DNA of 64,000 nt from Adineta vaga (GCA_021613535.1 CP075493.1:124001-188000); one strand, 5' to 3'; shown: positions 4,275-58,524, counted from the first letter of the stretch. A program made the numbers and translations. The notes: a model not told the origin generated them from the sequence alone.

Positions 4275-4975
4275 GTTCACTCACAAAACTCAGTCAATCT
4301 GAATGGATTTCCATCGTAAATAGCCTAGCATTCCTACCAAAATTACGTTTACTCTTATCTGTTAGCGATTTATCAAGTTATAATTTTCTTCTGAATTATA
4401 CTCAAACAATAGCTGTCTCGCCACATCGTATACTTCTCCGTCAATGGCTCAATCAGAATCTTGTACTTCAACATTCTCGAGTCAAGTTTTTCGTGAATCA
4501 TGGAGGAATTAATAGTATCGGTGAAGGTGTGTATGCATGTAAACCGATGTTGGTAATGCCTGGTTTTGCTGATCAACAAGCAAATGCTGCGAAAGCTTTG
4601 GAGCTGCAGATTGGTTTAATTTTACATCGTGATAAACTATCATCAGAAACTTTAGTTGAAAAACTTAAAGAATTAATAGCGAAGGAAGAGCTGATGAAAG
4701 AAAAATTATTTAAGTTACATCAGATATCGGAATTAGAAGGTGGTGCAAAAATGACAGCAAAATTAATCAATCATTGGCTTCTGATTGGTTATAAACATGT
4801 AGATACAACTGAAAATTATCTCTCAGTTGTAATTTACTATGAGTTAGACATGATAGCTACATTTGGGCTCATTGCGGTTGTTGTTTTAGTCGTCGTTATA
4901 AAAATTATAAAAAAACTATTTTCGGCAAAGCGAGTTATGAGTTCAGGCGACAAGATCCAAAAAAAGAAACTTTAA
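4275..4975 (+). CDS. UDP-glycosyltransferase (GT1, animal membrane-anchored type), last exon; upstream exons probably lie before the window
   Basis: Acceptor tttcag at 4274. UGT signature WLNQNLVLQHSRVKFFVNHGGINSIGEGVYACKPMLVMPGFADQQANA, C-terminal TM helix (MIATFGLIAVVVLVVVI) and lysine-rich KKKL tail. Confidence 0.9.
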
Positions 4976-5802
4976 CCAATACGACAAATATATTAAATGC
5001 TAATATAAAAAACTGGTAAATATTAGCAAGATTAAACTGTAAAGAAACATTTTTATATGTTATATAAGCGGACCACATATTACTTTTTTTAAACCTGGAA
5101 CATTATTTTATTTTCTCCAGCGTATTTATCCATATTGAAAAAAAAACGGAAAATGAGACACCCTAAATAATGGGTTACGAAGCTCACGCCGCAAGGAAAG
5201 TTTCTCAGCTTAACAATTGCTTTCCACTTGAAACGTAATTGAATATAAACAATCAATCATGCTGAATTTGAATAACAAAGTCTGTACGGCTAATTAAACC
5301 ATTAATATCTTAGTTTTGTAGAAATCAGCTGTTCATAAAAAGTCTCCCCGTTGTAAAATGATTTCCTGAGGTTCTCAGATCAGAGAGCACATTCAATTGA
5401 ATATAAGAACGTATTTTTGTTGATTTTTACCGACTACTAATATCTATCAAACATAAAACTTCACGTGTGTCAATAGCTTTTCCATTCCTAATAATTTTTC
5501 GAAATTACTTTTTCGATGTATTTCCTAAACTAGTAATTATCATAGGATTGTTATGACAAAATGCTGGTAATTTTATTATTTATATCAGCTGTGACATCTA
5601 TTAGTTCATGTGACATCTTTTGAATATTGCTACAATGCACAAATGCAAATTTGTATCATGCGATGGTAATATCCAATTCCCAGGAAATTCAAATAAAACA
5701 TGATCATAGTTAGTATCTTGGAAATTCATTTAACTCAATATCAATAATGGACATAGTCTAACATTTATATTTAATATAGAAAAAAAGTTTAGAGTATCGA
5801 CT

Positions 5803-5891
5803 GGGTTGGGTTGGGTTAGCATGGGTTGAGGGTGGCTAGGGTGTGGGTGTGGGTTGGTTAAGCGTATAGCCTGCCCCACACCCACACCCTC
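5803..5891. repeat. Inverted telomere-like repeat cassette (GGGTGT.../...ACACCC)
   Basis: G-strand repeats followed by cccacacccacaccc after a short spacer. Confidence 0.6.
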
Positions 5892-6639
5892 GGTCTGGCT
5901 GCAAGGTTCCTTTTGAATGAATGCGTTACCATGGCTTTTCGAAGCTCTAAAACTGTGGTAGTGCAATCAAATAAAGGGAAGTTTTCAACAAACGTAGGTC
6001 GTCCAGGTATCTGGAGAACGTATACGTTTCAGCTCTGTAGCAACTATGGCTCTTGAGTTAGAACTACTACAAAGCGAAAAATGCTGAGTGCGTTACTTGT
6101 GGACAAGCTCCATATGAAATAAATTACCTGGCTTATGCATATACCACCTATTTTCATCTTGTCTGTTACCATAAAACTTTACATAGGTCAACTTCTTGTC
6201 TTTAGTATTGTCCCAACACTTTATGGACGTTTCTGTAGACCGAGGAAAGCACCTGAGAAACTATGGTGACGTTATCTACGTGGAACATCTTGACTGACAC
6301 TTCATCCAGGTTAACCTAGCCCACATCGTCATCCACGCTCCTCCCTCATGTTCCAACAAGTTCTCGACGTTATTTCGCGCCTAGGAAACCACCATATAAA
6401 GTTTGGAGATTTTACCCATCATAAAACCATCTGGGTGAAATTTCACCCAGATCACTTATATCACCCACGTTCACTCGCAGGACTTGAGGACCTATGGGTA
6501 CTCCTATAATGAAGAACTTGAGGACACGAGGGTAATGCACATGAAGCCCAGCAGACTGATATATCCTGTGAAAATGACGAAAAAAGAACTTTGGCAAAAA
6601 ATCCCTGTACTCCTCCTCCAGGATGGTCTGGCCAGTTTT

Positions 6640-6850
6640 CAGTATTTTTACGAGAACTCAAGCAATTCTTGACCGATTGGTCTCATCTTCGAACTCGACT
6701 GAGATATTAATGAGGCTAAACTGTGTGGAAAATTTCAGCTCAATCGGACTCTCCTTTCGAAAGTTATCGGGTAAACGGACAGATAGACGGACGGCCGGGC
6801 GGACATACTGACCGATTTTAGTAGTGTATTCACTTTTTGAGTACACAAAG
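6640..6850 (-). mobile_element. Dispersed repeat, possibly Helentron-associated (DINE-1/HINE-like); second copy on + at ~9943..10140
   Basis: The two copies are homologous (tttgtatactcaaaaag..gaatcggtcagt..gtccg..; tcaatatctcagtcga.ttcgaagatga) and carry a GTCC/GTCT-type microsatellite. Family call is inference. Confidence 0.5.
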
Positions 6851-10497: not shown

Positions 10498-13400
10498 ATG
10501 CAACTGTTTGTCTTTGGAGATCAGACTGAAATGTCGCGTGATCAGCTCTATGACCTCTTACGCTCTGCAAAAGTCTTAAGATCACTTGCAGATTTCTTTA
10601 CACAATCCTGTAATGCTCTCAAATATGAGATCTCGTTATTGAATAGGCTGGACCGCAATCAATTTCCTGTATTTAACACACTCAGTGAACTCATCGATAA
10701 TTATTATCAATTTTGTGCTCATAATGATACTATTAATGGTGTACTCATCTGTCTGGCTCAACTTGGATGTTTTATCAGGTATGTACATACATTCCGCCAA
10801 GATAACTCTGTTGAATTATCACGCATTCCGACCACCTCCATTAATTGCAGATTTATGGAAACAACGTCTTCCTCGTATCCATCGTCCGATTCCATTTATG
10901 TCGGTCTTTGCACTGGTCTTCTATCAGCTGCAGCTATTGCAACATCAAAATCTCTCACTCACTTGATGACAACAGCTATAGACATCGTACGTATTTGCTT
11001 CAAAATAGGACTAGTGGCAAAACGTCGTGCTAAACAGTTAGAGCCGGAAAACTGCATTAAGAATACTTGGTCAATGTTGGTCACAAATCTTTGTTCCAGT
11101 GAAGCGCAATCAATGATTGACATCTCGCAGAAAGAACAGGTAAGTGTGAATGTAGCAACTGAATGTAAAGATCTAACTATCGTATGGAAAAACATAGAAC
11201 TAACAAACTAAAGAAAACATTGTTTTCTTCTTCTCTAGAATATTGTTCCTAATAAGCAAGCATATGTTAGTGCCGAATCGATTTCTTCAATAACTATAAG
11301 TGGGCCACCGTCAACATTGAAAATTTTATTTGCAAAGGATCAGCCACTTGCAGCTTTCAATCACATTCCCATTCCAATCAAGGCAGCATATCATGCTAGT
11401 CATTTGGGATTTGTGGATGCTAAGAACATTATGGAGAGTCGATCTGAACTTAGTACTCAGCTTGTAGATGGGCGAATTCATTCCACTCGAGATGGCAAAT
11501 GTTTCCGTGCTTCAAATCTTCGAGATCTGTTGACAGAAATCATTGATGATATTTTGGTCAAGCCACTAAAATGGAATTGTGTTGTTGCAGAACTCATTGC
11601 AATAATTAAATCAAATAAATGTGATGATATCAATGTTTTTTCATTTGCATCACCTATGGCATGCAAACATTTGGCTGAAAGACTGCGTGAAACTGGAGTA
11701 GCAGTCCATATAAAAAATACTGATAAAGATATATCGGCAACATCTCATTATCACAGAAGTGGTGACGTAGCGATTGTTGGAATGAGTGGTCGATTTCCTG
11801 ATGGTGAAGATCTGGAAGAATTTTGGAAAACTTTGATAGATGGGCTTGACCTCCATGGACAAGTATGTTGTTTTCAATCGCTCTTCATAAAAAATCTTCA
11901 TTTTCATCAATACTTTTTACAGATACCAAGTGATCGCTTCGATGTAAAAACTCATTACGATCCCACAGGGGCAGTTAGGAACTCGACCTTAACACAGTAT
12001 GGATGTTTTATTGATCAACCTGGACTCTTTGACATCATCCTATTCAACATGTCTCCACGAGAAGCGGCTCAGACAGATCCTCAACAACGTCTTGCTCTCA
12101 TGACCACATATGAAGCTTTAGAAATAGCTGGCTATGTTCCTAATAGGACACCGTCGACCAACACGCGTAGAATTGGGAGTTTTTTTGGACAAACAGACGA
12201 CGACTGGCGTGAAGTGAATGCGTCTCAAAATATTGACATATATTTCATTACTGGCGGTACTCGTGCCTTTGGACCTGGTCGTATCAACTACTACTTTAAA
12301 TGGGAGGGTCCATCGTACAGCATTGATACCGCATGCTCTTCGAGTGCTGCATCTGTCCAGCTTGCATATTCCGCTTTAGTGAATCGAGAGTGTGATACTG
12401 CCGTGGCTGGTGGTACGAATATTTTAACATCACCCGATCCCTTTGCTGGATTGAGCCGTGCGCACTTTCTCTCTCGAACGGGATCTTGTAAAACGTTCGA
12501 TGACGATGCGGACGGCTATTGTCGTTCAGATGCTGTTGCGTGCATTATAATGAAGAGACTCGATGATGCTATCGCTGATCACGATAACATTCTATGTGTG
12601 ATGACCGGAGCTGTGACTAATCATTCCGCAGACGCTGTATCCATCACACATCCTCATATAGAAACTCAGCAGCGATTATATCGTATGCTGTTGAATAATG
12701 CTAATGTTCATCCAAATGATGTTGACTATATCGAGATGCACGGCACGGGAACTCAAGCTGGAGATACGTGTGAGATGCGCTCTGTTGTCGACGTTTTCGG
12801 AAACAGTCGCGACTCTAACTCACCGTTATTCATCGGATCTGTAAAAGCAAATGTCGGTCATTCTGAATCTGTAAGTACTATATATTTCAAAAAGAAATGT
12901 AGATACTGCGAGCTACATCCATCACTTCGACGTGGTAAAAAGACTAGTTTACATTCCGAACCCAAATAAATACATATAGTTTTTAGAAAAGTTTTTTTCT
13001 CTAAAGGAAGAATGATGATGTAGACTAGTGTAGAAATGGATGTGATTATGAAGTAAAGGAATTATTCGCATTCCAATATATTGAAAAAGGATACAATAGT
13101 AGCAGATTTTTATGTAACTAAACTAAAACCACAATCGATTCAGACTGTATAATTCAACTTATCATAATTTAAAATGATTATTTTCGATTTCTCACAGTAA
13201 AATCTATTGAAACATAACCTCTAACTAATTATTTATGTGTCACCCGTTACATAAATAAATAGTAGTATATTTATCAGCAAGGGTGTCAGCGTTCCCCGTT
13301 CCCAAGCGTTCCATTCCCAGGAACGGAACGGATTTCAAAATACACTTTAAGACATTTTTTCGAATACAATAAAGTTGTTAACGTGTAGTTATCCACATAT

Positions 13401-16400
13401 TAAGCGAAAATATGATCCGTTCTCAGAACGGGGAACGCCACTTGCATTCTCCGTTCCCTTTTCCCCGTTCTTAGAACGGGAATGCCGACTCCGTTCAGTG
13501 ATTGGACGAATACAAGTACAAATACTTGGTACTTAGCTAACTGTACTATGGACTTGTACTCAGTACTTTAGTACAATGTACTAACGAGGGGAGATTCCCA
13601 ACTGTGCAATCGATTTTGAGTTGATATTTTGGCTATAGGCTGCGAGGTGGGGATCACAAGTCCAGAATAATTCTAAAGAGAACTGGGCCGCTAGACCTTT
13701 GGGGTCGAGTTATGGGATTTTTAGGAACTTTTTGACTATTTATTCAATATCGATGAAAAAGTAGTGTCCTGCGGGAACGAACATTTTCCCTAATTTTCCC
13801 ATTCCCATTTAGATTTAGAGAATGGGAACTAGGGAATGGGAATGATGATTTATATTTAGGGAATGGGAAGGAATCAGAAAAATAAACGTTCCCTAAATTC
13901 TTTCCATCTGATATATGTTTATTTTTTTTTGATAATTTTCCTTATTCACATATAATTAACAAAAATGCGTAAGAGCAAAACTAGACTATTGCTTTATTAT
14001 TAATAATGTCGTAATTCAATCATTGATCACATAACTTTCTTCCTCATAATTGCCATCTAAATTATCATCATCAAGATTATATTGTAATTCAAGATCCGCA
14101 TCATCTTCTTGTGACATTCGATTAATCCCATGTTCCAATGACACATCATCAATATAATCTTCTTCAGCTGCATCCATATCATCATATTCTTGTGATAAAT
14201 CAATAGCAACATGTTTATCTATTGAATATTTTCTTTTTTTCATCGGTGTAGCTGATGTACTACTATTTGTTCTCTTTTTCACTTGTTCAATAGATGGTGG
14301 AAATAATTCTCTTAATAATGATATATTTCGACGAATGAATAATAATTGGTTTACTTTAGTTGTTTGTAAACGTGTACGACGATTTGTAATGGTATTTCCA
14401 CTATCTGAAAAAAGCCTTTCGATTGACGTGTTTGTTGCTGGTATTGATAAAACACGCTTTGCTATTTGATATAAACTTGGATATAATAATTTGTTATCAT
14501 TCCAATAAATTAAAACATTTATATTTTTAGGAATTTTTGTTTTATCTTTTAAATATCTGTCAAGTTCTGAGGATTCTGGTTCATCTGATAATTCATCAGA
14601 TGAAGTAGGCAAATCAAAGATATCATCTAATGATGATAATAATTTTGAATTTTTCTGATGGTGGATCGGTTTTCTTTTGTTGTTGTCATTTGATGATGGT
14701 GGTGGAGGATGAGAATCTTGATATTTTTCAAATTCTAATTGTAATAATGTTTCTGCATGATATCGTTGTTGTGGTGTATGATTAAAGCTTTTAAGATTTG
14801 GATGCAACATTGTTGCAATATAATGAATATCTTGAACAATCCAATAGTCAGGTAATTCTTTAGCAATATATTTCTTCAAAGGTATCAATAATTCATTTTC
14901 ATTATCACCAACCGCAGAAAGATTAATCAAACATTGTTTATAAGGAACAACGAGATGTATTGTTGGTTCTTTTTCACTGCTGAGTTTTTCAACAACCTTG
15001 TAAAACTCTTTTAAATATTCGCATAATGATTCTAGACCATCACGATCTACTTTCAAATAATTCTTCTTTTGTTCATCATTGAGAATAGGCGGTAAATCAT
15101 AATAAACTTTTAAGAAAGAATTAAACATCAAATATGTTCCATTAAAACGTGTGTCAGAATAATTAACTGGACATATTGGTAAAAGAGATTGTTTATGAGA
15201 TTGACGAATGTGACTGATAATTGCTCGAACTAATTTAAATACCAATTGAGTACGATCACATTTTGTATTATTGTTAAGAAATGCATGTTGAAGGATTTTA
15301 TTCAAATAATGTGCACTACAACCAACACGTATACAATCGTCTTTGAAAGCACATTTCATTTTATTTTCATTGTCCGATACAACAAAAACTTTCTCATTCA
15401 GAAAAAGACCATATTCTTCTAAGATTTTATTAACAAATGAACGTAAATTAATTGAATGTTGAGTTTCAAAGTCATATGCTTGACATGCTAATGTAAAGAC
15501 ACGAAGTTGAGATTGCTCATCAACATAATGAAGACTGACACCACCATAATGAACACCTTCAACATAAAAAACAAATAAGATAGATGAATTGTCATCTCAA
15601 TAAGAAAAATAGATTTACCAGTTAGTTTTGCTGTCCAGAAGTCCGTAGTAACACTAAAGCTTTTCAAAGATACACATAGAGAGATCAATTGCTTTTTCAA
15701 GTTTAAATAAGTATGTTCGACACTATGACTAATCTATAAAAATGAATTAATATATTAATGAAATCCTATATAGAATATAAGATAAGTACTCACAGTAGTT
15801 GGATTAGGTAATAACTTGTTGATATTGACAGATGTGCCTAAAGTTGCTCCAGCATAGACTAATTGTTTAGCTAAATTTCTAAATCCAACACCACGTATGC
15901 TTTCGAAAGAACGTCAATCAATTGCACAATTGTAAGGACAAACTGGTTGAGTAGCGAACCGTTGCTCACGGTGTAGATGTTTATTGAGCTACTTCACATA
16001 CCCAGAGTGTAACCACTCTACAATACAATGCACGCTTATAGAGAGAGAGGAAGAGAGAAAAGAACAAGAGGATACGCATGATTGGGAGAGATGATCATAT
16101 ATTGATATCACCACATGGGGTGATATCTTTATCGTTACAACAATATTCAACACACGCTTCAGTAATACGTTTTTGAATCAATGGACATTCTTTTAATGTT
16201 GAAGGTTGTGTACAATAAGAAGAAATAGATCGTTATCGAGTTGGAGTTGTTGTTGTCGATGAGGGTGATGATAACAATTTACTTTTTGAACAGTTATGAT
16301 GAGTCATTACTCGTGTACCATGATCTTTTAACCACTTTAATAGACATTTACATTGTAAACACACAATATAATCTTGTGGAATATTAGAAAAAAACTTGAG

Positions 16401-19400
16401 AATAGTTTGTCCAACATTCACTTCGTTTATTTATTGGCTTTTTAAATGAAATCAAATGATCATCAGATGTTACCAAGGATTGTAGATCAGTTTTTGACAA
16501 TACCGATATCGATTTTTCAGAATTACTTGTAGACATTGTTCAGGATAAATAGACTGAAGAAGAACGAATTTTGTTTATGTTAAGAGAATAAATGTTAGTA
16601 GAACGTACAATTTACTTTTTCTCCAATCACAACATAGTTATAATTTATTTAACAACACGTCGCATTCTCATAGAACGTGATGCCGCTAGAATATGATACA
16701 TATATACGTCATTGATATTTTTTCAAGGATAAATAGCGGTATCTATTACTTAGGGAAAAATGGGAATGCGAATGAGAAACGAAAAAAAATTAGGGAATGG
16801 GAAACAAAAATAAATTTTTAGGAAAAGGGAATAGGGAATGGGAATGAAAAAAAGTTGTTCCCGCAGGACACTATGAAAAAGTCAAATAACGGAGTTTTGA
16901 TCTGAAGTTTTGTCCTTAGATGGGTCTATTCATCATCAAAATATTCTGAAAGCTTCAGCTAAAAAAATGATTTTTGTCGAGGTACTGTATTACTAAAACA
17001 TAATCGCTTATCGCCGACTAGTCGCAAAATTCCAGTTTACTTGAAAACTCAATACCTCGACAGAGGAGCATTTCTTGGCAGAAACTTTCAGAATATTTTG
17101 ATGATGAATAGACCCATCTAAGGACAAAACTTCAGATCAAAACTCCGTTATTTGACTTTTTCATCGATATTGAATAAATAGTTAAAGAGTTCCTAAAAAT
17201 CTCATAACTCGACCCCAAAGGTCTAGCGGCCCAATTCTTTTTAGAATTTTTCTGGACTTGTGATCCCCACCTCGCAGCCTATAGCCAAAATATCAACTCA
17301 AAATCGATTGCACAGTTGGGAATCTTCCCTCGTTAGTACATGTACTATAGTGCAATATGCAGGACAACATGGTATCTACTATATGTACTTGTACTGCATA
17401 AATGTACTACGTACTGAGGTTTGTTGAGTACAAAGTACGAAAAGTACTAAGTCCTGTGCTAAGTGTCCAATAATTGACTCCGTTCCCATTCTTCAGAACG
17501 AAACGCAAAAGTGGCTCCTGTTTATCAGTCTTCTCCGTCTATGTAAGAGAAAATTATTGGATATTCGTTAAATAATACTAATCGTTTCTCACAGTCTAAA
17601 GACATTTCAACGTTTGTTTAGTTACTCTTTCATTTTTAAGTCCCCATGAATTATGCTTTTCTCCATTAGTTTTAAATTTATTCTAACATCTACAATATAC
17701 CTAGTCTACGAGTTGAACTTTACAGGCTGCAGGTATTACTTCTATTATCAAAGCTATCATGATGTTACAGCATGATATCATTCCGCCACATATTGGTATC
17801 AAAAAGCGTATAAATTCAAAATTTCCTCCATTGGATACTTCAAATATTTATATTGCCAAATGTCCTATGGAGTTCAAACGTCGTGCGAACAAGCAGAAAC
17901 GAACCATCGTTGTCAATAACTTTGATGCCGCTGTTAGTATTTTTCCTAACGCTTATTGCTTATTTTAAATATTTTTATTAACAGGGCGGAAACACTGCAA
18001 TACTTATTGAAGATGCGCCAGTTTTTTCTACGAAAGGAACCGATCCTCGAACTGTTCACGTGGTTACTGTTTCGGCAAAAACACCGTTTTCCTTCAGAGA
18101 AAATGCCAAACGTCTTCTAGCATATATTACGAAACATCCCGAGTCATCCATTGGGGATATTTCCTACACCACTACTGCTCGTAGAATGCACCACATGTTT
18201 CGTGCAGCGTTTGCAGTCAGTACTACTGCTGAGCTACAAGCTTCTTTAAAAGATTTAGTCACCTCAACTGATGCACCAATCAGGACTTCATCAGTGGATG
18301 TAGTATTCGTCTTCGCTGGCCAAGGCAGTCATTATTTTAAAATGGGCAAAGAACTGTTTGACAACTGCTCTACCTTTCGTAGAGATATTCTAGATTATGA
18401 CAATATTTGTCAGACACAGAATCTTCCTAGTTTCAAAGCTTTGATCGATGGTACAGCAGAAAGCCTCGAAACATTGTCTCATATTCAAATTCAATTGGCA
18501 CTCATTGCTCTTGAGCTCGCATTGGCAAATCTATGGTTATATTTTGGTATTAAGCCTGCTCTTGTCATTGGTCATAGTCTTGGAGAATATGCTGCATTAT
18601 GTGTTGCTGGCGTCTTATCTGTCAATGATTTATTTTATCTTGTTGGAAAGAGAGCATCTTTGATAACTAATTTGTGCAGTCAAGATACACATGCTATGCT
18701 TACTGTTATGCTCGATGCAGTAACGGTTAAAAAAGACCTGTTACAGAATAATACTTCTTGTGAAATTGTCTGTTTCAATAGTCTACAGTCTACTACGATT
18801 GGTGGAGGCACTTCCGAAATCTCCTTTTTGAAGACATTTTACGAGTCAAACGGTGTCAAAGCAACAAAATTGGAAACATCTTTTGCTTTCCATTCGTCAC
18901 AAATAGATTCAATTTTAGTAGATTTTCGAATCGTTGCAAAGGGTGTGTCGTTTTCTAAACCCATTATTCCTGTTGCATCCACTCTGCTCGGAAGTATCGT
19001 GCAGCAGGAAGGTGTCTTCACAGCAGAATATCTTTGTCGTCATGCTCGCGATCCTGTGAAATTTTCCGATACACTCGAAACGTGCAAGACAACTGGTATA
19101 GCGGATGAGCAAACTCTCTGGCTAGAAATTGGTCCGAGCGCTGTTTGTTTAAGTATGATAAAATCGGTTCTAAATGTATCAGAGCCTTTTATTGTACGAA
19201 CTCTGAAAAAGGAGGAATCAAATTTGGTCTCGATTGCTAAGAGCATTGCTAAAATTTACGTAAGTGGTGTTGACGTTAACTGGACGGCATATCACCAGGA
19301 ATATGAATTAAGCCATCAACTAATGATGTTACCGACGTATGCTTTTGATTTACAAAACTATTGGATTCAATATGAAGGAAATTGGTGTCTTCAGAAGAAT

Positions 19401-22056
19401 ATGACTCCTAATGTTCAACTTATTGAGAAATCAACAGTATCTTTTTTCGGCACGACCACTCTGCAGCAAATCCAGAATGAAGACTTTGACTCGAGTGACA
19501 TCAGCGTGACTTTTGTCTCGGATATTGCTGATTCCAAACTTCGAAATGTTATTCAAGGACATTTAGTGAATAAAGTCGCAGTATGTCCGGGTTCTGTTTA
19601 TTCGGATATGGCCTTGACTGCAGCAAAGTATATTCATAACCGTCGCAAGCGATCAAACTCGCCTATTTCAATGGATATTGTGAATATGAAAATAATACAG
19701 CCTTTAATTCTGACGGGCAATTTTGAAAAACAATATATCTATGTTTTGGCTACATGCAGGGCAAATTCGGATATTGTCGAGTTAATATTTGCATCGGAAG
19801 AGGTAGAAAATGTTGGAAAGAATTTAATTTGATTTTTTTCCTTGACTATTGAAATGTGATACTGATATTTATTTTAGGGATCCATAAGGAAACAGCATGG
19901 TAGTTGTGTTGTTCAATATGGTGATGGCGTAGAATGGATGACTGAATGGGCTAGACAAGCTTATCTCATACAAACTCGTATGAACTGCCTCGTTGAAGCA
20001 GCTGAACATGGCAAGGCACATCAATTACTTCGAGGTATTGTCTACAAGCTTTTTTCTGTTTTTGTTCAATATTCTGAGAAGTATCGTGGAATGGAAGAGG
20101 TATGGATGGATTGCAATATGCTTGAAGCCACGTCAAATATTAAATTTCAAACTACACCAGAAGATGGTTCATTCGAATATAGTCCTTACTGGCTCGACAG
20201 TCTCTATCATTTGTCTGGTTTTGTGCTGCATGGTACAGATACTATGAATGATGATTTCGTCTATATTGCAGATAGTTGGAAAGGCATGCGTATTGTCGGT
20301 CAACTTTCGACCAATAAAACGTATAAGAATTATGTCCGCATGCAACCGATTGACAACGGTCAAAAGATGATTGGCGATGTTTATGTATTTGAAGAAAATA
20401 GAATCATTGCAGTTTGTACTGGTATTCAGTTTCAACAGATACGTCGATGTGTTTTGGAGCATATCTTATCATTGAATGCTGACAAAATTGTAGTGCAAAA
20501 AACACAGGTAGTTTCGGAGAACAAAGGTTCTTGTTTACCTGATGTTAGTATTCCATTGGCAGCTAGCTCTAACACATTTCTCTTCGATGAAATTTTGGAG
20601 ATGATTGCAAACGAAGTCGGAGTAAAAAAATCAAAACTTGATGATAGTACAAACTTGATCGATATTGGAGTTGATTCGTTGCTCACCATTTCAATCTTAA
20701 CACGGCTTCATCAATTAACAGGTCTTGATATTCCAAGTTCACTGCTCTACACTCATTCTTCCATTGGAGATCTTAAGAAGTTGGTTGGTGTCGATCAATC
20801 AAAAGAAATTGGAAATTCAAACAGACATAACGAGTCATCCAAACCTGCATACTTGTTATCTTCTACTACATTAAAAAGTACTTCAGACATCTTGGACCAT
20901 CGTTCAAGTGACGAAGTAGTTAGTGTTATACGTTCTATCATTGCTTGTGAGATAGGTTGTCGTGAAGACAAAATTCTTCCATCGACTGTGCTGGCTGACT
21001 TAGAAATTGATAACCAAACGCGCTCATCCATCAGAGGTATCATTCAAGCAAAATTTGGAGTGAATTTATCAGAGAGTTTCTTCCAGAATCGAATTACCTT
21101 TCTGGAAATCGTTAATCAGCTAGGATTTACTTTTGAAGGATGCACGCTAGGATTAATACAGGGTCTCAATGAGCGAATCACTGTTTTGACAAAGCAAAGC
21201 ACATCTGTTCTCCTTCACCGTACATCAACCAGCCGATCGCCATTGTTCTTATTTCCAGAAGGGTCCGGGTCAGCTAGTTCCTACATGTCACTGCCTTTAT
21301 TTGACAATAATATGACCGTTTATGCACTCAATAGCCCGTTCCTTGATTGTCCATGTGAATTCACCTGCACAATGGAAGAAGTTGCTGCGATATATCTAGC
21401 TGAAATTCGAAAGAGACAACCTTTAGGGCCATATATATTGGGTGGATGGTCTTCTGGAGGTATAGTGGCCTACGAAGCTGCAACTCAATTAATTGCTTAT
21501 GGAGAGAAAGTATTGGGATTGATTCTTATAGATTCTCCATGTCCTTTAACATTTCCACCGTTATCGGTCGAATCTATCGATATTTTCGAATCTATCGGCA
21601 TTGCCGACAACATTTGCAAAGGTGCTGGCAAGATTCCAAAATCATTGAAGCAGCATTTTATTGCAACGCTCAAAACTTTGGAAAACTACACGCCTAAGTC
21701 AATGGATTCAGCAAGAGCACCTAAAAGCTTCATCGTCTGGGCGAACGAAGGTATTTTAGAGTCTACCAAATATGATCATATCGAAATTCTCAGAGATGTG
21801 AGTTTTAATAAGACAATGGTTTGGCTACTAGACCAAAAGAAAGATTACAATCCTAAAGGTTGGGAAGAATTGATTTCTAGTGTTGAATGCGTAGTCATTC
21901 CTGGAAATCATTTTACAATCATGAAACACCCTCAGGTTAGCAATCATGTTTTGTATAAATACTATACATTAATGTATTCTTTTATCTAAATTACTTTAGG
22001 TCACCGCTTTGATGAAAGAAATTGAGAAGGCTGTGGCAAAATTCACCAAGATTTGA
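10498..22056 (+). CDS. Fungal-type iterative non-reducing polyketide synthase, SAT-KS-MAT-PT-ACP-ACP(degenerate)-TE; 8 exons, 2093 aa
   Basis: Exons 10498-10778, 10851-11139, 11239-11862, 11923-12870, 17726-17932, 17985-19802, 19878-21935, 22000-22056. All introns are GT..AG and the joined 6282 nt read without a stop. Motifs: SAT GLCTG and ISGPPS; KS DTACSS, EMHGTGT, KANVGHSES|AAG, NNFDAA|GGNT; MAT GHSLGEY and FAFHS; PT dyad GHLVN..CPGS and WLDSLYHLSGF; ACP GVDSL; TE GWSSGG, LIDSP, GNHF. AATAAA at 22133. Confidence 0.95.
14016..16540 (-). pseudogene. hAT transposase (BED zinc finger, DDE core, hATC dimerization domain), disrupted
   Basis: CLQCK..HHNC BED finger, SVTTDFWT, VSDNENKM, CSAHYLN, DTRFN, PATNTSIERLFS. 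N-terminal exons are broken by a solo LTR, a stop and frameshifts. Confidence 0.88.
15931..16139 (-). mobile_element. Solo LTR
   Basis: TGTAAGGA...TCGTTACA termini, 5-bp TSD acaat on both sides, TATAA and AATAAA on the minus strand; 209 bp. Confidence 0.8.
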
Positions 22057-22635
22057 TAAGTTGGGAGCATCTCTCGTTTATGAACATGAACAGAATACAG
22101 TATAACAGTGATAAAGTTGTTCTCAGTTGCTGAATAAATATAAAATTGATGAACATATAGACCTTATTCAAGACATGAAATTTGTGGAACGGATTCTAAA
22201 AAAATTTGATCATGGGTGGGGATGGCATTTTAACTAGAGGGGAAAAATGATTGCAGTCAAAACAATCTCTAATAATCAAAAAGGAATAGAATCCATCGAG
22301 TCCAAGAATTTTTAAAACAGGACTCCAATTTTAAGTAAAAACATGATATTATCACCTTTTTGTGTAGCCCCCACAGAATAAAAGCCCAGCCTGACTGAGC
22401 TCAGTAAAATATAGACAATGCACTGAATTGGGTAAATCAAATATTTATTCTCTCATTTTCTCATAGTTGCGGAGGTTGATATGGCTGCTTTATCCAGTGT
22501 AATAGATAATTTTCTACCGGCAGACATGCGTATTTTTCTCATCAACTGAGACTTTCACTCATAAAAGTTGTAAAATAAGGACGAGGGTGGGTAAGGTCGT
22601 TTTTCGGCCCACGTTTGAATCAATTTATTTATATC

Positions 22636-22735
22636 TTGAGGGTGTGGGTGTGGGTGGGTGGGTGTGTTAGATAGATGTAATACTCGCACTCTCACCCGCA
22701 CCCACACTGACACCGACACCGACACCCACACCCAG
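22636..22735. repeat. Inverted telomere-like repeat cassette
   Basis: atcttgagggtgtgggtgtggg, then a spacer, then cacccacac...cacccacaccc. Confidence 0.7.
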
Positions 22736-22871
22736 CATAAGAGCTACTTTGTAGGCATGCAACGGTGATGGTGAACCACCAGTTTCACCGGCCACTGGTC
22801 CACCGATTCATCAGATTATTTATGCCATATTATCAGTCGGTAACCAATGCTTTGAATCCTACATTTAATAT

Positions 22872-23802
22872 GGGAACTCGGAATTTCGGTCCAGGGACGA
22901 AAAATCAACGGAATTTCGGTCCAATTCTTAATTAAATTAGATTTAATTAATTATCAATTAGTAACTTCATAGTGCTGAGCAACATCAATTTCAAAATTCA
23001 TAGTGCTAAGCAAGTTGACATAGTGCCGAGCAATATGAATATCAAGAGAATCATCTTGCTAAGCAGTATGATACAAAGTTCTTCAAGAATTGGAAGTTTT
23101 ACTGATATAATTATTATTAGAAATGCTTGAGTAATTTTAAAATTCTTTCGTATTTATACTGGATAAATCGATGAAAAAATGATATAAAGCTTAATAAAAC
23201 GAATGCATTTTTATCATACACAAGTATTGTTCGTTGTGGGTTTTGTTTTCTTGAATAAAATATATGTACATATGGTTTAATTGTTTGATAGAGAAACTAC
23301 TTTGTGGAATTAAGTAAATAAATGTCAATTTTAGCATAGATGATTATCTATATCTTTCTACGATATTGTTGAAACCTAGTAACTGAAAAGGAAGGTATGC
23401 TCGGCACTATGTCAACTTGCTTAGCAGTATGAATTTTGAAATTGATGTTGCTCAGCTCTATGAATTTTGAAATTGATGTTGCTCAGCTCTATGAATTTTG
23501 AAATTGATGTTGCTCAGCTCTATGAATTTTGAAATTGATGTTGCTCAGCTCTATGAATTTTGAAATTGATGTTGCTCAGCTCTATGAATTTTGAAATTGA
23601 TGTTGCTCAGCTCTATGAATTTTGAAATTGATGTTGCTCAGCACTATGAAGTTACTAATTGATAATTAATTAAATCTAATTTAATTAAGAATTGGACCGA
23701 AATTCCGTTGATTTTTCGTCCCTGGTCCGAAATGTCACCGGAATTTCGGACTGGGCCGAAAGTTTGGGACGAAAAATTTCTGGACCGAAATTCATGTAAC
23801 CC
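22872..23802. mobile_element. TIR element (GGG..CCC ends, Merlin/MULE-like) containing a minisatellite
   Basis: 8-bp TSD tttaatat; long inverted arms (22890..23030 mirror ~23400..23730). Confidence 0.75.
23428..23644. repeat. 31-bp minisatellite, 7 copies
   Basis: Unit tatgaattttgaaattgatgttgctcagctc repeated head to tail with no spacers. Confidence 0.95.
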
Positions 23803-24883
23803 TTTAATATGGACTGGAGTGTCTAACAAAATCTTGTTTATCCGAAGACATGGGCATATTAAAAGACCCCTCATATTGGAAGACCTCCCCATAATAGAAG
23901 ATTATTCTGAATAAATTATGTAAAAGACACATTAGAAGACCCCCATTGTTTTTCCACGCATAGCAATTAATTCTTTACCCCTTCCGTAAATACATTTTCA
24001 AAGTTTTAGCAAAGAATATATTTCTCTTGCCGTTAAAATGGTCGATACTCATAATGTATTTGTCTGTTCTTACTAACGTTTATGGTCCTATACACTTAAA
24101 ATATGGCACTAATGAAATTCATCGCTATCTGCACACAAAAATAGGATTTTTTAGCAACATATTGGAAGACCTCCTTTAGAAGTTAGTGGCAATTTATTGC
24201 CTATAAAATCACCGATCTCACCGGCCTATGGGTCCACTTGTCAATGCAGTGGGCCGGTAAACGGTACACCGTCATCGTTGCATGCCTACTACTTTGTACC
24301 ATAATAGAGAGCTAGCATGATGCGTTTTATTGGCAACTCATTACTTGATCAAACATTGACGAAAAAAAGACGCCCATATATATTGCTCTAATGAAGCGTA
24401 ATCGCAAGCATAAATCAATATAAATAGCCGTACATTCAGGTCTTACTAAGACACTAATATGAATGATAAACAGCAACCAATCCTTTCACCACTAATTGTC
24501 AATGGTGTAGATAAGTTTTTATCGTTTATGTACCATCGCCGAATCGAACCGCGCTATATGGATGTTTGCAGAACTAAACGTTGCTGATCAACTGGCAACT
24601 ATGGGTCCAAGTAATGCTAAAGAGATCTGCATGAAAACAGGTTGGAAGGATATAGACAGACTGCATCGGCTCCTACGTGTCAATGTAGTGGCAGGACTCG
24701 TCGAAATGCAAGATGATAATCGATTTATACTAACTGAGACTGGCCGTCTTCTCACCTCTGATCATCCGTCACATGCTAGATGTTTTGTAATTACAAGTAA
24801 GTCAATATATTATTTAAATTTTCTTTTTTTCTTGATACAAGATACATCCTCGAATAGGTATACAACGGTGAGGATAACCGTAC

Positions 24884-37937: not shown

Positions 37938-40680
37938 CGAGGGAAGGCCACCAACTGCCCCCTCGCTTTTGAGCTAAAACTCGGTTGTCAATAGGTAATC
38001 GAACATGCTGATTCCGAATATCAAAATGGTTTTTGCCCGGTCTCGATTTAAAGACCAGTTTTTCAAAGATCTTGGATTTTCACCCGAAAAACCATTTTTA
38101 CTAAAAAAAATTTTCGACCTGTGCAAATGATAGAGCACCTCACCAAACCTACAGAAAACAATTTTCAAGGTTCTAATCGAGGTTTTGAGCAAGTTTTCTG
38201 CATCTAAAACTTAAAAAAAGAGAGAAAAATCGCTTATATTCTTATGCAGTTTATGAAAGAAAAACAGTAGTTTTTCTTTCTGTTCTGTTTTTTACTTATC
38301 AACAACATTCAAAAGTGGAGGACTGCATGCATGTGTTAGACGTGATATACATCTTGATACATTCCAATTTCATAAGAATTGGGCAAAAAGTAAAAACTGA
38401 CAACAGATAGCAGCTATAGAAAAATTTTCAAAGCATATGAGATGCATAATTCAGTGCAAAGAACAGAGAACAGAAGAGAAATATTTATAACAGCAGCAAT
38501 CTATAAAAAATATATGTAATTTTAACACTCGTATCGCAGCGTTAGAGTTATATAACGTTTGATACCACGTTTTTACTCAAACTCGAAAAGTATCTGTCCA
38601 TTGCGGCAGATTTCGTCATCTTTTTCCCGTAAACCAAAATGAATGTACAGAACATCGTTTCGGCTTTGAGTGATTTAATTGCAAATAATTTGACCGTTAC
38701 ACAACAGTCTCCGATTACATCATACGAGCGACAAATGGCCGAACATCTAGCTGACACTGTTAAATTGATAGGCAGTGGACAAAAAGTTGATTACGTTGAA
38801 GAAACAACTTTGGATTTCGGTCGTTATACCGACGATGAAGAAAGTGAAGAGGAGGAAGAATCCATGCTGGGTGAGAAAGAAAGTGAAGAAATGGATGAAG
38901 ATTGGAAGGACAAAGAATTAGCTTTTCAAAAATATAATTTAAGAAGCTTTTCAGAAGATTTTATGCGTCAAGTTATCGATTTTGTTGATCATGCAGGTCC
39001 GGAAAGTAGACATGGTAGATCCTGGAAAGCCATTCATCACCGATTTCGAACAATCCCAAGCAGAAGTTATATTCGACGTTTTCGAAAATATTTGGAGCAT
39101 CATGGAACAAAGCGACAGAAGACTCAAGATGTGGATAGTTTAGTTTACAAAAAGTTAGTTGATGCAAGAGAAAAGAATCTCGTTGTTCATGATTTGGATA
39201 TTCAGCGATGGGGTTTAAAAATAGCTAAAGAAATAAAGCTCACCGATTTTCATGCTTCTCATGGTTGGTTGGAGAATTTTAAAAATCGTCATAGATTAAC
39301 TTCTCTGAAAATTACAAACTTTGTTTCACATCATCAAGTCGAAAACCGGGAAACTATAGAAAAATCAAAGCAAAATTTTATTTTGGAGTTTAATAAAGTA
39401 TCATCTCACTTTAAACTATCTGAAATTTTTAATACAGACCAAACAGGTGTCCAAAAAGAATTACACTCCAATCGTACTATATCTTTCGTTGGTGAGAAAA
39501 GGACTTTTGCAGCTGTGCAGTCGAAAAATGCTACTACTCACACTTACACTTTACAGCCAACTATCTCATTAGACGGACGACTCTTGGAAACGATTTATTT
39601 ATGTTTGCAAGAGCAGGGAGGTGAGTTAAACGTCAGTCGAACCGTTTTAAACCACTATCGTTAGTTTTTGTTCTGTAGGAAAAATGGGAGAGCAAGTTAA
39701 GCGACGCTTGTTTCAGCCGAAAAATGTCGTTATAACCTGTTCGACGTCGGGAAAACTTACCACTTCACTCATACAATACTGGAGAGATAACTGTTTTCTT
39801 CCATTGGTTGGTGCTAAATGTTTGCTGCTATCCGATAGTTACCCAGGGCAAAATCGCGAAGAACTCTATCAACCGGAAAACTGTGGTGGTAAAAAGGTCA
39901 CACGTTTACAAATACCACAAAATACAACTAACGAGCTACAGCCACCGGACTGTTATTTCAATAGACAGATTAAAAATTTCCTCAAAGCATGTTATCATCG
40001 TGTAGCGTTGGATGAACTAGATATACACTTACACGAACGAAATAACATCATACGCTTAGTCAGTCTAATGCATAATCAATTGAGCGCAGATTTATTTACA
40101 CCAATGATTGAATACTCTTGGTTCTCTAGCGGCTTAATACGTGAAGATCCTTCTCCATTTGTCAGCGTTAATCAAGTTTGCTTTGCGAGTTCAGAAACTC
40201 ACATACACTGTGAAGAAAAACACTGCAATGAGTCTGTTTTTATAACTTGTGCTCGGTGTTCGAACAAATTATGTTTTCAACACTTTTTCACCAGTTATCA
40301 TTTCCATTAAGAACACAGCAAATACTTTTATGAATCGCGGTTCTATGGAACTGTTTTTCTTTCATAAACTGCATAAGAATATAAGCGATTTTTCTCTCTT
40401 TTTTTAAGTTTTAGATGCAGAAAACTTGCTCAAAACCTCGATTAGAACCTTGAAAATTGTTTTCTGTAGGTTTGGTGAGGTGCTCTATCATTTGCACAGG
40501 TCGAAAATTTTTTTTAGTAAAAATGGTTTTTCGGGTGAAAATCCAAGATCTTTGAAAAACTGGTCTTTAAATCGAGACCGGGCAAAAACCATTGTGATAT
40601 TCGGAATCAGCATGTTCGATTACCTATTGACAACCGAGTTTCAGCTCAAAAGCGAGGGGGCAGTTGGTGGCCTTCCCTCG
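37938..40680 (+). mobile_element. Full-length Tc5/pogo-like DNA transposon
   Basis: ~330-bp near-perfect TIRs starting cgagggaaggccacc; target ctaag with TAA duplicated (CTNAG type). Confidence 0.93.
38639..40310 (+). CDS. Tc5/pogo transposase (CENP-B-type HTH, DDE_1, C-terminal Cys/His finger), 2 exons, 537 aa
   Basis: Intron 39621..39678 joins the two ORFs in frame. Motifs FHASHGWLENFKNRH, FNTDQTG, LLSDSY, LQPPD, CARCSNKLCFQH. Confidence 0.9.
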
Positions 40681-50617: not shown

Positions 50618-51037
50618 ATGTCAGCTAATAATGATACAGAAGCAATAGCCGGATATGGTGTGAAAGGCGATCGTATCAACGCTTCCTTTGAATCGGTGTG
50701 GAAAGCAATGCTTGATAGTATTTATCATCCAGAAAAATACATTCCCGTAAAAAATGTGAAGATTATAGATAATGATGATCATATTTACCGAGAAATGTTA
50801 CATGAAGATGGATTTCTGCATAAAGAAAAAATTTTTTGTGACAGGGAGAAAGGTGAGTTTACATTCATTGATCCTGGCGATTTCGTGCATAAAAATAAAT
50901 ATTACAAAGATGAACAAGTGTTAGAATACTGGCTGGAAAATTATCAAGGTGAAAGAATATCGTGGAAAGAACCTAAAGTATTGATATTGTCAGCAATTAA
51001 GAAAACACAAGAATTAGCTGAAGAACAAGAGGAATAA
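50618..51037 (+). CDS. AtaL-like (DUF1857) SRPBCC/START-fold protein, 139 aa
   Basis: INASFESVWKAMLDSIYHPEKYIP-VKNVKII...IYREM...KEKI pattern and C-terminal helix (AIKKTQELAE); acceptor 6 nt before ATG; AATAAA downstream. Family recognised from pattern only. Confidence 0.7.
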   Translation: MSANNDTEAIAGYGVKGDRINASFESVWKAMLDSIYHPEKYIPVKNVKIIDNDDHIYREMLHEDGFLHKEKIFCDREKGEFTFIDPGDFVHKNKYYKDEQVLEYWLENYQGERISWKEPKVLILSAIKKTQELAEEQEE

Positions 51038-51681: not shown

Positions 51682-51709
51682 CTATAGTATAACTCATCAC
51701 TTCTACTAA

Positions 51710-56585: not shown

Positions 56586-57206
56586 TAGTATTAACTATGT
56601 AAAATAATCTATGAAAGTTTCAAAGAGTTTGCTTTTACTGAAGTTGTGAACGATGAATTTCAAAAATTCCCCCAGAACTTCTGGGACACCCTTTATAGTA
56701 TGCGACATTTTCATGTGTCCAATATATTTTGATAATTGCCTATCTACTGTTGACTTTAATTAGGTCCTTAGATGCAGCTTTTGACGGGCTTTAATTTGGT
56801 ATGAATAGTTGACTATATCATTGATTCATTAGGTCGCTAAGGAAGGGTGCGTAAAGGTTTTTTAACACTCTGTATTACTCTGTTGGTTCGAAAGACTAAA
56901 CTTTGTTTGACTTATTAACAAATCTAGGTACGATGGTTAGTATTCTTACCGTAACATTCGTTCAAAGATATACACTCCTTCATGGAGAATCGTCGTCACC
57001 GCTATAAGTCCAAAAAATCGGGTCTTCAGAGTCGACAGAATAAAAAGTAAATACGAGTGCTACACGGAATATAGAGAAACATATTATCACTCATGTTGGC
57101 TTCTCAACGTAGTCTGCTCACATTTATGCCTGGCCATAACCCGGCGTTACAGAGGATCAACTTTGATTTGAGTTAATAGATGCTCTTTAATTGGATGCGG
57201 TCCTAC

Positions 57207-57659
57207 GCTCTAAAAACATAGGTGCTCTACTAAACCCCCCAAAAAGGTTTCCTCGTTAAGAAAAAATCTGTAAACATGCGCAGCGTTTGACAAATACAAT
57301 AAAAAATTCTACGAAAGCATTAAAGGATCGTCCCGTGTACCGGCGAGGAAAACCTTCTGCTACGAAACTTTTAGAGTTTCATATTAAACTCCACAAGAAT
57401 ATTGTAGTTTAGTATGAAAATATTTGGTTTTCATCTGAAACTCTAAACACTTCGTGTTCTACTAAACCTCTTTATGTTGTCCTGCACTTTAGAAAAATTT
57501 CGTCTGAGAAGGTTCTTTCCGCCGGTATACGGGACGATCTTTTAATGGTTTCGTAGAATCTTTTTGTTGTGTTCTCCAGACGGTGAACATGTTTAGAGAC
57601 TTTTCCTAACGAGAAAATCTTTTTGGGGGTTCAGTAGAGCACTAATTTTTATTAGAGTG
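57207..57659. mobile_element. CACTC-type palindromic MITE
   Basis: ta|cgctctaaaaa...ttattagagtg|ta with internal inverted arms; similar in style to 900..1298. Confidence 0.65.
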
Positions 57660-57755
57660 TATAAAACATTTCATATATGTATAATTTCTTCAAGACTATA
57701 TTTAAGCATGTCATGTACTACTTCCTGAGAAATTATCGCCAAGTTTCAGAAACTG

Positions 57756-58524
57756 TCAAATAGAAGTTTTTTTGCTCAGATAATGCGATATTTCTCTTTC
57801 CAATGTATGAATGAGTGCCTGCAGGATACAATCTAGACTTACTGCAGTAGCACGCTTGAAAAGTGTTGTAGGAAAAATAGGGATACAGCCCAGTTCTTTA
57901 GCTTCTGGATTATAATAAAACTGCGTAATCCAACAATCATTAGTTGCTACGCGCCACCATGCATCTTGTAAAAACCCGTCAGATTCATTTCGAACGATGT
58001 CAAGTTTTGCATGATCTGCTCCTTCATCGAGAATGACATGATTGATATCTTCTAAGTCGAATTGTACAACAACACATGGACACATTTCTTGAGGCAGTGA
58101 AGTTGATGATGTCGAGGATGATGATAATTGATCGTGAGCCCTGATCTCAAGAGGATTGTACATCGCTCTCACATGTTCGAGACCTGAAATGACGACAGAC
58201 CTCACCCAGTGAACAAATTCTTGGAATGTGGTGTGTGGACCATTTTCAAGATGCATCCGTAGAAGTTGATAATACATAAACGGACCAACCAGTTCGGCCG
58301 CTTCCGGTTCTACAGGGCGACTGGCCATCGTGTATGCGATGCCAATATCGTCTACCCAACAGTTCACCAGCTCATAAAGAAAAGTACAAAAGCTTGCTAG
58401 ACAGATAGTTGCCAGCGTTGTGCTGCATTCATCCGCATATTGAAGCATCGCACATAAGATGCTTTTGTCCACTATTGATGGTACCGTAAAAGCCGGCACC
58501 ACTGATGGTAAGTGTAATGTCCAT
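57756..58524 (-). CDS. Divergent C-terminal half of an NRPS condensation domain; probable terminal exon or gene fragment
   Basis: STTLATICLASFCTFLYEL..DDIGIAYTMASRP..EAAELVGPF..QLLRM....TTFQEFVHWVRSVVISGLEH parallels the C-domain consensus TLF..LLAAF..LL...DIVIG...ANR...LIGFF.N.L.LR...PTF.ELL..VR..L.A..H. Ends ..PTTLFKRATA. Acceptor at 58525. No HHxxxDG seen. Confidence 0.65.

Follow-up and report, generated by a model that had tools for sequence, protein, structure and literature searches.

Introduction

Fungal-type non-reducing polyketide synthases (NR-PKSs) produce pigments, toxins and antibiotics, and animals, to our knowledge, are considered to lack them. The FAS-like polyketide synthases (PKSs) that animals are known for, such as SpPks1 of sea urchins, the AFPKs of sacoglossans and PKS-1 of nematodes, are type I enzymes whose polyketide products serve as pigments or in defence; they derive from animal fatty-acid synthase and have neither SAT nor PT domains. 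A subtelomeric stretch of the genome of the bdelloid rotifer Adineta vaga (Av20, Chrom_1:124,001-188,000; 64,000 nucleotides, hereafter the window, in which all positions are given) raises an unusual question. A sequence-only reading proposed that it holds a functional aromatic-polyketide gene cluster, composed of a UDP-glycosyltransferase (UGT), an NR-PKS, two O-methyltransferases (OMTs), an SDR reductase and several more distant genes. Its guess of a bdelloid rotifer as host was right, and the KS coordinates agree with those published. Is there such an enzyme in this animal and, if so, is it surrounded by a pathway or just by other foreign genes?

NRPS and PKS-NRPS clusters that bdelloids gained by horizontal transfer have been published before (Nowell et al., 2024; PMC11258130). 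These are NRPSs or modular hybrids, mostly bacterial-like, and were found via their A and C domains. The locus described here shares with them the genome, the subtelomeric setting, a foreign origin and domestication with introns, but it has no A or C domain, and that study includes it neither among its 40 listed Av20 regions nor in its listed Chrom_1 tBLASTn rows. Inventories centred on A and C domains thus miss stand-alone PKSs in the A. vaga genome. In other soil invertebrates, namely springtails and Plectus, the beta-lactam gene clusters are a case of fungal or bacterial secondary-metabolite genes at work (cited in PMC10531068). For the enzyme class at issue, the fungal-type aromatic PKSs, our literature search found no report from animals.

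A complete fungal-type NR-PKS

The NR-PKS gene spans positions 10498-21989 on the plus strand and consists of six exons, separated by five GT..AG introns, which together encode 2,116 amino acids with every codon open. Its domain order, as given by Pfam, is SAT-KS-MAT-PT-ACP-TE, while KR, ER, dehydrating DH and methylating domains are absent from the Pfam matches on all exons. The SAT match is the sole one in the 100.8-Mb A. vaga genome.

Exon 1 (10498..11139; donor GTAAGT at 11140) encodes the N-terminal part of the SAT domain (Pfam SAT, 3.1e-44), in which the active-site motif GXCXG takes the form GLCTG, aligned to GVCTG of CTB1. Exon 2 (11239..11862) contributes the end of SAT (profile positions 188-239), a linker and the start of KS; the in-frame intron that follows (11863-11922, 60 nt) appears as an insertion when compared with PksA. 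The KS core lies on exon 3 (11923..12870; Pfam ketoacyl-synt, 1.1e-71), where the alignment with PksA identifies the Cys-His-His residues in DTACSSS, HGTGT and GHSE. After a long intron (12871..17725), KS ends on exon 4 (17726..17932), which was delimited by sequence reading and splice joints and is 78% identical in the orthologue L007. Exon 5 (17985..19802) comprises the KS-AT linker, the MAT domain (Pfam Acyl_transf_1, 1.4e-37) with its GHSxG motif (GHSLGE) and AFHS, and the start of PT with the catalytic histidine in GHLV (Pfam PKS_DH_N). Finally, exon 6 (19878..21989; Pfam PS-DH, PP-binding and Thioesterase) carries the PT aspartate in YWLDS, the ACP serine in GVDSL and, before the stop codon, a TE of the Claisen-cyclase type, whose Ser-Asp-His residues fall in GWSSGG, IDSP and NHF in the alignment with the PksA TE. 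GHLV and YWLDS align with the His/Asp dyad positions of PksA, with a one-residue uncertainty in the index mapping. Every catalytic motif is kept and, judged by these residues, the enzyme looks catalytically competent.

PksA (norsolorinic acid synthase) and CTB1, fungal NR-PKSs with a TE/Claisen-cyclase end, top the PDB matches of each exon (to PksA, 432 bits for KS, 358 bits for MAT and 122-128 bits for TE) and agree with the rotifer enzyme in domain order and catalytic residues. However, identity outside the KS is only about 25-50%, and the rotifer gene differs in its animal host, in its five introns, of which fungal-type relatives lack at least three, and in the lack of fungal-style cluster partners of common origin. 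In Atlas, its top-ranking cluster is that of Ascomycota (score 0.99), and its KS is 68-71% identical to those of two fungal-type contigs (L009 and L028), which are intron-poor and GC-rich and run contiguously, without introns, across the rotifer intron sites. The SAT- and PT-containing fungal-type NR-PKS that the sequence-only reading had seen in this bdelloid subtelomere is therefore real, as attested by its Pfam domains and PDB matches, and it is of the fungal aromatic type, in contrast to the FAS-derived SpPks1, AFPKs and PKS-1, which are likewise encoded in animal genomes.

The adjacent methyltransferases and reductase

Next to the PKS lies OMT1 on the plus strand. Its exon A (24459..24796; Pfam Dimerisation, tblastn) encodes a dimerisation domain and its exon B (29237..30027; Pfam Methyltransf_2, 3e-28) a SAM-binding methyltransferase domain; they are separated by a putative intron of 4,440 nt (24797..29236) with phase-compatible GT..AG borders, which is filled with repeat-rich inserted DNA containing inverted repeats. 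The start codon is cut off from the remainder of the gene by a frameshift of 1 nt, which lies in a T5 run near 24511-24517. VDVGGSCG and the catalytic histidine are kept, whereas HDW is changed to HNN, and exon B is about 40% identical to every member of its family.

OMT2 (30687..31844, minus strand) is an intact, single-exon class I OMT of about 385 residues (Pfam Methyltransf_2, 6.8e-40), with an open frame that continues upstream to 31970. It is collinear with 386-residue homologues from Rotaria (63%), and both its SAM-binding motif VDTAGGLG and LHDW, with the catalytic histidine, are present. Its best PDB matches are AlpH, 6c5b and CalO6; the nearest solved relatives (AlpH, CalO6 and MmcR) are bacterial and belong to aromatic-polyketide pathways. 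Pfam, tblastn and the translations thus bear out the earlier description of one frameshifted and one further OMT.

The reductase (32816..33865, minus strand) is an intact extended SDR of the GRE2/ketoreductase type with 349 residues (Pfam Epimerase/3Beta_HSD), and its PDB matches, CpKR and yeast GRE2 (E about 1e-49), agree with its earlier identification. The catalytic serine (VVTSS) and the YxxxK motif (YCVSK) are present; in the Rossmann motif (TGANSFIAG), the second glycine of TGxxGxxA is replaced by serine. From a chemical point of view, OMT2 and this GRE2-type reductase would make plausible partners of the PKS, the one methylating phenolic oxygens and the other reducing carbonyl groups.

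Outlying features of the window

The gene list of the sequence-only reading holds for the PKS, the two OMTs, the reductase and a SET gene, but less so for its remaining members. The proposed UGT, 5.5 kb upstream of the PKS, is partial: what is present is the C-terminal, UDP-sugar-binding half (4169..4975, plus strand; Pfam UDPGT positions 325-495 of 499, E 6.6e-20), while Pfam and tblastx found no N-terminal acceptor half in the upstream frames. This piece is of the animal type, with human UGT2B17, 2B15 and 2B7 as best PDB matches and 39% identity to the C-terminal exon of a different UGT from A. vaga.

Downstream of the reductase, an inverted repeat (34089..35500; 654 nt, 99% complementary, 104-nt spacer) lies outside any pathway. 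It is followed, at some distance from the core, by the multi-exon SET gene (35534..37312, plus strand), whose last open frame (37037-37312) matches Pfam SET above the cut-off (3.7e-6) and whose upstream frames match no Pfam family. Pfam further detects a Tc5/pogo-type transposase (38639..40310, plus strand; HTH_Tnp_Tc5, DDE_1 and Transp_Tc5_C), a second Tc5/pogo element (52329-52709) and a DDE_3 transposon (55589-56149).

Also distant from the core, the divergent AtaL-like (SRPBCC) ORF (50618..51037, plus strand; 139 residues) retains its proposed affinity through Atlas, a language-model similarity (0.94; 188 shared features; 27 of 30 matches in the AtaL set), and BLASTP (38% over 68 residues, E 5e-12, to the Pfam-positive C4 AtaL of A. 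vaga), but not through Pfam: PF08982 gives neither an hmmscan match at E<=5 nor a genome-wide profile match at the site. Its single-sequence fold is unusable (pLDDT 44). The proposed NRPS condensation fragment, a 265-residue ORF (57756..58553, minus strand), is not upheld; it scores 22.6 bits against a PF00668 cut-off of 30.6, covers only the middle of the profile (positions 233-335) and has no PDB match at E<=1. The UGT fragment, the SET gene, the AtaL-like ORF and the condensation-domain scrap are not part of any demonstrable unit.

Is the core a cluster?

The core proposed earlier, 10498..33865, was correctly delimited: PKS, OMT1, OMT2 and reductase are consecutive and physically adjacent, with only transposon-filled introns intervening. 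Of the claim that they form a functional cluster, an intact-looking, transcribed NR-PKS followed by two OMT genes and a reductase remains; against it, these genes represent separate families with different outgroups and without conserved linkage. The two OMTs are members of an old family that occurs throughout bdelloids, and the reductase, also from a bdelloid-wide family, falls into a bdelloid clade (100/100) that is sister to Ascomycota.

The synteny with related bdelloids that a cluster would lead one to expect was not found, as ten OMT or SDR loci from Rotaria, A. ricciae, A. steineri and other assemblies, homologues rather than assigned orthologues, all lack a PKS within 10 kb. The linkage comparison rests on these OMT and SDR loci, the PKS orthologue contigs ending within 0.9 kb of the gene. 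Likewise, the nearest fungal-type PKS contigs (L009 and L028) contain no OMT or SDR of these types, and the 60 kb around the closest SDR paralogue have nothing else in common with the window. Because the OMTs and the reductase stem from distinct families found throughout bdelloids and the ten loci lack a PKS, the core, on these sequence comparisons, is not a fungal cluster transferred as a block. This sets it apart from the springtail and Plectus beta-lactam genes, which appear to have been co-transferred, whereas the neighbours of the rotifer PKS have independent histories.

Since the neighbour families were separately acquired and are widespread in bdelloids, their adjacency most likely arose as foreign genes piled up in the subtelomere and were shuffled there. 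Our preferred reading, to which we assign a probability of roughly 60%, is that the locus centres on a single domesticated gene of foreign origin, an iterative non-reducing type I PKS of the fungal type, with separately acquired tailoring-type neighbours that were most likely brought together by subtelomeric shuffling.

Four consecutive genes of cluster type are improbable by pure chance, which speaks against shuffling. Given that 100 Mb of A. vaga sequence hold one SAT locus, about ten OMT loci and three copies of the SDR, a cluster assembled within the rotifer is for this reason a live, if doubtful, option. The PKS, OMT2, perhaps OMT1 and the reductase would then be held together by selection and act in one pathway to yield a phenolic polyketide that is O-methylated and reduced in part. 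The intact state of OMT2 and the reductase, the expression of the PKS and the selection on it (see below), and the role of AlpH, CalO6 and MmcR in bacterial aromatic-polyketide pathways are in line with this. However, apart from the absence of linkage at all ten loci, the outgroups differ (bacterial-type for OMT2, Ascomycota for the reductase), OMT1 is frameshifted and fast-evolving, and members of the GRE2 family are general carbonyl reductases, not specific to secondary metabolism. Furthermore, Pfam found no pathway regulator and no transporter or exporter in the about 70 frames scanned, and the improbability of the arrangement is inflated by the selection of 'tailoring-like' families in hindsight, as most foreign genes in the region are enzymes.

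Any pathway link would have been assembled in the rotifer rather than inherited as a fungal cluster, and we estimate a probability of about one in three that one or more of the neighbours act on what the PKS makes. Less probable is a more specific scenario, in which bdelloids recruited a bacterial-type OMT and a fungal ketoreductase, through separate transfers, beside the fungal NR-PKS, and co-express them to produce a methylated phenolic compound, perhaps in response to attack by fungi; we consider this unlikely.

Transcription, selection and integrity of the PKS

The third PKS intron (4,855 nt, GT..AG) houses a hAT transposase ORF (14016-15359, minus strand; Pfam) and 187-nt subterminal inverted repeats (13576-13762 and 17155-17341). 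A PKS broken by this hAT element was considered and rejected: contigs from sequencing run X1 join 12870 to 17726 and 17932 to 17985, both across GT..AG introns, and skip the 4,855 nt exactly. The PKS is not disrupted, because splicing removes the intron in which the element lies. Runs were taken as RNA by inference from their spliced contigs; X1, X3 and X4 show exon-only coverage of the gene, and 47-81% of its exon words are present in four runs, all from one study. The NR-PKS is thus transcribed and correctly spliced across its transposon-bearing intron.

Two rotifer-like orthologues, L007 (66-78% identical) and L008 (53-57%), have three intron positions in common with it, including the last ones. 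With a dN/dS of 0.20-0.25 against these two, the NR-PKS has evolved under purifying selection.

These observations bear on whether the locus could be a decaying, transposon-riddled relic, with a PKS that is transcribed at noise level and yields no product in A. vaga. The large transposon-bearing introns of the PKS and OMT1, the frameshift in OMT1 and the partial UGT would fit such a remnant, as would the low depth of the PKS contigs (2-5), the absence of PKS words from six other RNA-like runs and an extra T after 18021 in one contig. Yet this T is missing from X3 and X4, all 2,116 codons are open with their catalytic motifs kept, the dN/dS values are low and the long intron is excised precisely; we therefore find a relic improbable. 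Fungal contamination or mis-assembly, which the fungal-type closest non-rotifer relatives might suggest, is refuted by the placement of the locus within an 18-Mb chromosome-scale contig, by its GC content (35-39%, matching the flanks), by short GT..AG introns that these relatives lack, by transposons in the introns that are related to copies elsewhere in the A. vaga genome, by locus DNA in runs of four studies, and by orthologues with the same introns in two other samples.

Proposed chemistry and implications

The domain content suggests the following route. One of the two phosphopantetheinyl transferases (PPTases) encoded in the A. vaga genome (loci on C2 and C5) would load phosphopantetheine onto the ACP, and the SAT domain would supply the starter acyl unit. 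Chain extension with malonyl-CoA by KS and MAT would follow, without reduction; the PT domain would fold the resulting poly-beta-keto chain by aldol cyclisation, and the TE, which resembles the PksA Claisen-cyclase, may shut the last ring and release a phenolic, probably bi- or tricyclic polyketide. A methylated, reduced and glucosylated product with a role in defence or UV protection, as envisaged earlier, is speculation.

The genome of A. vaga contains a complete aromatic-polyketide synthase of the fungal type, which is transcribed and has been conserved. The enzyme is encoded by one tractable gene, and heterologous expression can reveal its product. If the neighbours turn out to work with it, the locus would offer a rare opportunity to follow the assembly of metabolic clusters in an animal genome; if they were indeed recruited through separate transfers and are co-expressed with the PKS, it would represent the first metazoan NR-PKS pathway and a cluster assembled de novo from foreign parts. 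In any case, the foreign biosynthetic repertoire of bdelloids, so far described as NRPSs and modular hybrids, now gains aromatic polyketides.

A complete non-reducing polyketide synthase

The gene at the centre of this analysis lies in a subtelomeric stretch (Chrom_1:124,001-188,000) of a genome of 100,824,805 bases in six contigs. KS matches on contigs 3 and 6 coincide with positions published for Chrom_3 and Chrom_6 of Adineta vaga Av20 (PMC11258130), so the bdelloid host supposed in the sequence-only reading is correct. It encodes a predicted fungal-type non-reducing polyketide synthase (NR-PKS), for which Pfam outlines, all on one strand at 10498-21989, a SAT domain, a ketoacyl synthase, an acyltransferase, a PKS dehydratase-like (product-template) domain, a phosphopantetheine site and a thioesterase; no reducing or methyltransferase domain was found in it. 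Exon boundaries, set by reading the DNA where frames break, yield six forward-strand exons (10498-11139, 11239-11862, 11923-12870, 17726-17932, 17985-19802 and 19878-21986), which sum to 2,116 stop-free codons and are separated by introns with GT..AG ends in all five cases.

Homology searches were run separately per exon rather than with the joined protein, and for all exons the closest solved structures are PksA and CTB1. In alignments of the exons to solved structures, the catalytic motifs are complete in every domain: GLCTG in SAT; DTACSSS, HGTGT and GHSE in KS; GHSLGE and AFHS in MAT; the His of GHLV and the Asp of YWLDS in PT; DSL in ACP; and GWSSGG, IDSP and NHF in TE. Genome-wide, SAT matches only this gene, while PPTase loci number two, on chromosomes C2 and C5. 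When the KS exon was searched against a representative library, the best 150 matches were giant multi-KS modular synthases together with the window's own partial gene model of 735 aa, an exact look-up of which returned no record; these matches did not help to place the enzyme.

Transcription across a transposon-bearing intron

Of the words sampled from exons 5-6 (17985-21986), 47-81% are present in four sequencing runs of one 2024 study and none in six other RNA-like A. vaga runs. Runs from two other studies of the species lack them as well; expression of the PKS may be condition-dependent. Compared with 12301-18300, the contigs of the four word-positive runs are confined to exons, except for 37 nt that belong to a multi-copy repeat. 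One contig of run X1 carries the joint 12870->17726 and a second the joint 17932->17985, both GT..AG and exactly at the splice sites placed from the sequence. The runs thus contain spliced RNA: the NR-PKS is transcribed, and its transposon-bearing intron is removed. Contig depth is low (2-5). An extra T after 18021, in a T run of exon 5, appears in one X1 contig (depth 4.5) and is absent from runs X3 and X4. A genuine insertion here would cause a frameshift, but an assembly error is the probable source.

The intron in question (12871-17725, 4,855 nt) contains a hAT transposase frame at 14016-15359 on the reverse strand, within an element that bears subterminal inverted repeats of 187 nt; one further genome copy of the transposase region was found, at 79% identity. 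The idea that this element disrupts the PKS was rejected on the splice joint that spans the intron in a run contig. Inside the hAT element, at about 15930-16139, lies a repeat of ~210 bp, of which every one of the six chromosomes has many copies (85-93% identity). Since it is touched by contigs of X1-X4, at least one copy must be transcribed. On the Logan contig L007, which carries a rotifer-like orthologue of the NR-PKS (66-78% identical), the intron matching the hAT-bearing one occupies positions 1-941 and measures at least 940 nt, as the contig stops within it. Great length, or repeats, may already have marked the hAT-bearing intron when the element inserted.

Origin and constraint

A search with exon 6 returned one protein at 66% and two at 53% identity; no remaining match exceeds 39%. 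Two of the three reside on L007 and a second Logan contig, L008, which have a GC content of about 40-42% and share exon boundaries with the window gene; composition and shared introns suggest that their sources are bdelloids. Relative to these two, dN/dS is 0.20-0.25 over 606-693 codons. The next-closest relatives, on five further contigs (L009 and L028-L031), show a KS identity of 58-71% and a GC content of 49-58%, and are contiguous across the rotifer intron sites, that is, without introns there. In the Atlas, a language-model similarity search, the top cluster for exon 6 is Ascomycota (score 0.99), and two metagenome scans recovered fungal-type or distant PKSs only and no further rotifer orthologue. 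Introns, transposons and the gene's place within a chromosome speak against contamination, which was rejected. In our reading of these sequences, a bdelloid ancestor of these lineages would have received the gene from a fungus in a single transfer; introns would then have been gained, and purifying selection would have acted over the long term.

That bdelloids carry horizontally acquired NRPS and PKS genes has been described before (PMC11258130, PMC10531068). For A. vaga, the inventory in print draws on A and C domains as well as on antiSMASH and tBLASTn; after 1-40,179, the next region it gives for Chrom_1 begins at 865,834, and its Chrom_1 match rows include none of the start coordinates within the NR-PKS that were searched for (PMC11258130). 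A full-text search, in which subscription journals were not covered, found no paper that describes a non-reducing PKS from rotifers or from any other animal.

A gene cluster or a stand-alone synthase?

The sequence-only reading had placed the NR-PKS in a functional aromatic-polyketide cluster with a UGT, O-methyltransferases (OMTs), a reductase (SDR) and further genes. In favour of a true cluster assembled within rotifers, the PKS, two OMTs and the SDR do follow one another, are of the right chemical kinds and include a transcribed PKS, in a genome where SAT has a single locus, OMTs have about ten and this SDR occurs in three copies.

However, these genes have independent histories, and the first OMT appears damaged. 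In OMT1 (24459-30027, forward strand), the remainder of exon A lies one frame on from the start codon, the shift falling at a T5 run near 24511-24517; either genuine decay or a homopolymer error could account for it. Splicing from a clean GTAAGT donor at 24797 to an in-phase acceptor at 29236 would give the 17 residues expected between conserved blocks; the SAM motif and catalytic His are retained, and identity to each other family member is only about 40%. OMT2 (30690-31844, reverse strand) is intact, and homologues of 386 aa are collinear with it. The family comprises members from Rotaria, Didymodactylos, A. ricciae and other A. vaga loci (44-63% identity), relatives outside rotifers do not exceed 35%, and the closest solved structures are the bacterial AlpH, 6c5b and CalO6. 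A further member, 57% identical to OMT2, is also subtelomeric (C4:14815922-14816569), and ~17 kb separate it from region 4.2 (14832988-14874043), a published NRPS region.

The reductase (32816-33865, reverse strand) is a GRE2/ketoreductase-type extended SDR and belongs to a generalist family. In its tree, the bdelloid homologues form one clade (support 100/100), sister to Ascomycota sequences, and the window copy groups with a paralogue on chromosome C6 and with A. ricciae (100/99); the 60 kb around that paralogue have nothing but the SDR in common with the window.

Linkage is not conserved at any locus examined. In other bdelloid assemblies, neither gene calls nor tblastn placed a PKS within 10 kb of any of six OMT and four SDR loci, ten in all. 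The PKS-bearing contigs L007 and L008 extend less than 0.9 kb beyond the gene, and the available flanks of fungal-type PKS contigs lack a homologous OMT or SDR.

The outer genes were confirmed in part. The UGT is present as an animal-type donor-binding half (4169-4975; best PDB matches are human UGT2B enzymes), and its N-terminal half was searched for and not found. The SET-domain exon is real. The frame at 50618-51037 scores 0.94 as AtaL-like in the Atlas and shares 38% identity over 68 residues with the genome's sole Pfam-positive AtaL protein; it has no Pfam match itself, Pfam AtaL being absent from the window, and its single-sequence AlphaFold model reaches a pLDDT of 44. With moderate confidence, we regard it as a divergent AtaL-like protein. 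The condensation fragment falls short of the Pfam cut-off, and no PDB entry matches it.

The remainder of 34-58 kb consists of transposases, a 654-nt palindrome and frames without assignment. The palindrome (34089-34742 / 34847-35500; arms 99% complementary, 104-nt spacer) directly adjoins the start of the reductase gene, and each arm contains a 130-aa open frame. At 42043-44999 (forward strand, 28% GC), four consecutive open frames of 248, 182, 138 and 343 aa match no Pfam family, DUF1258 and Pox_P21 appearing below threshold only; they may represent an unclassified mobile element.

No regulator or exporter was seen, and picking 'tailoring-like' families post hoc in subtelomeres rich in foreign enzymes overstates the rarity of the arrangement. 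We thus consider a rotifer-assembled cluster rather unlikely. Given the points on both sides, we commit to a stand-alone NR-PKS, predicted from its sequence to be functional, as the established core of the finding.
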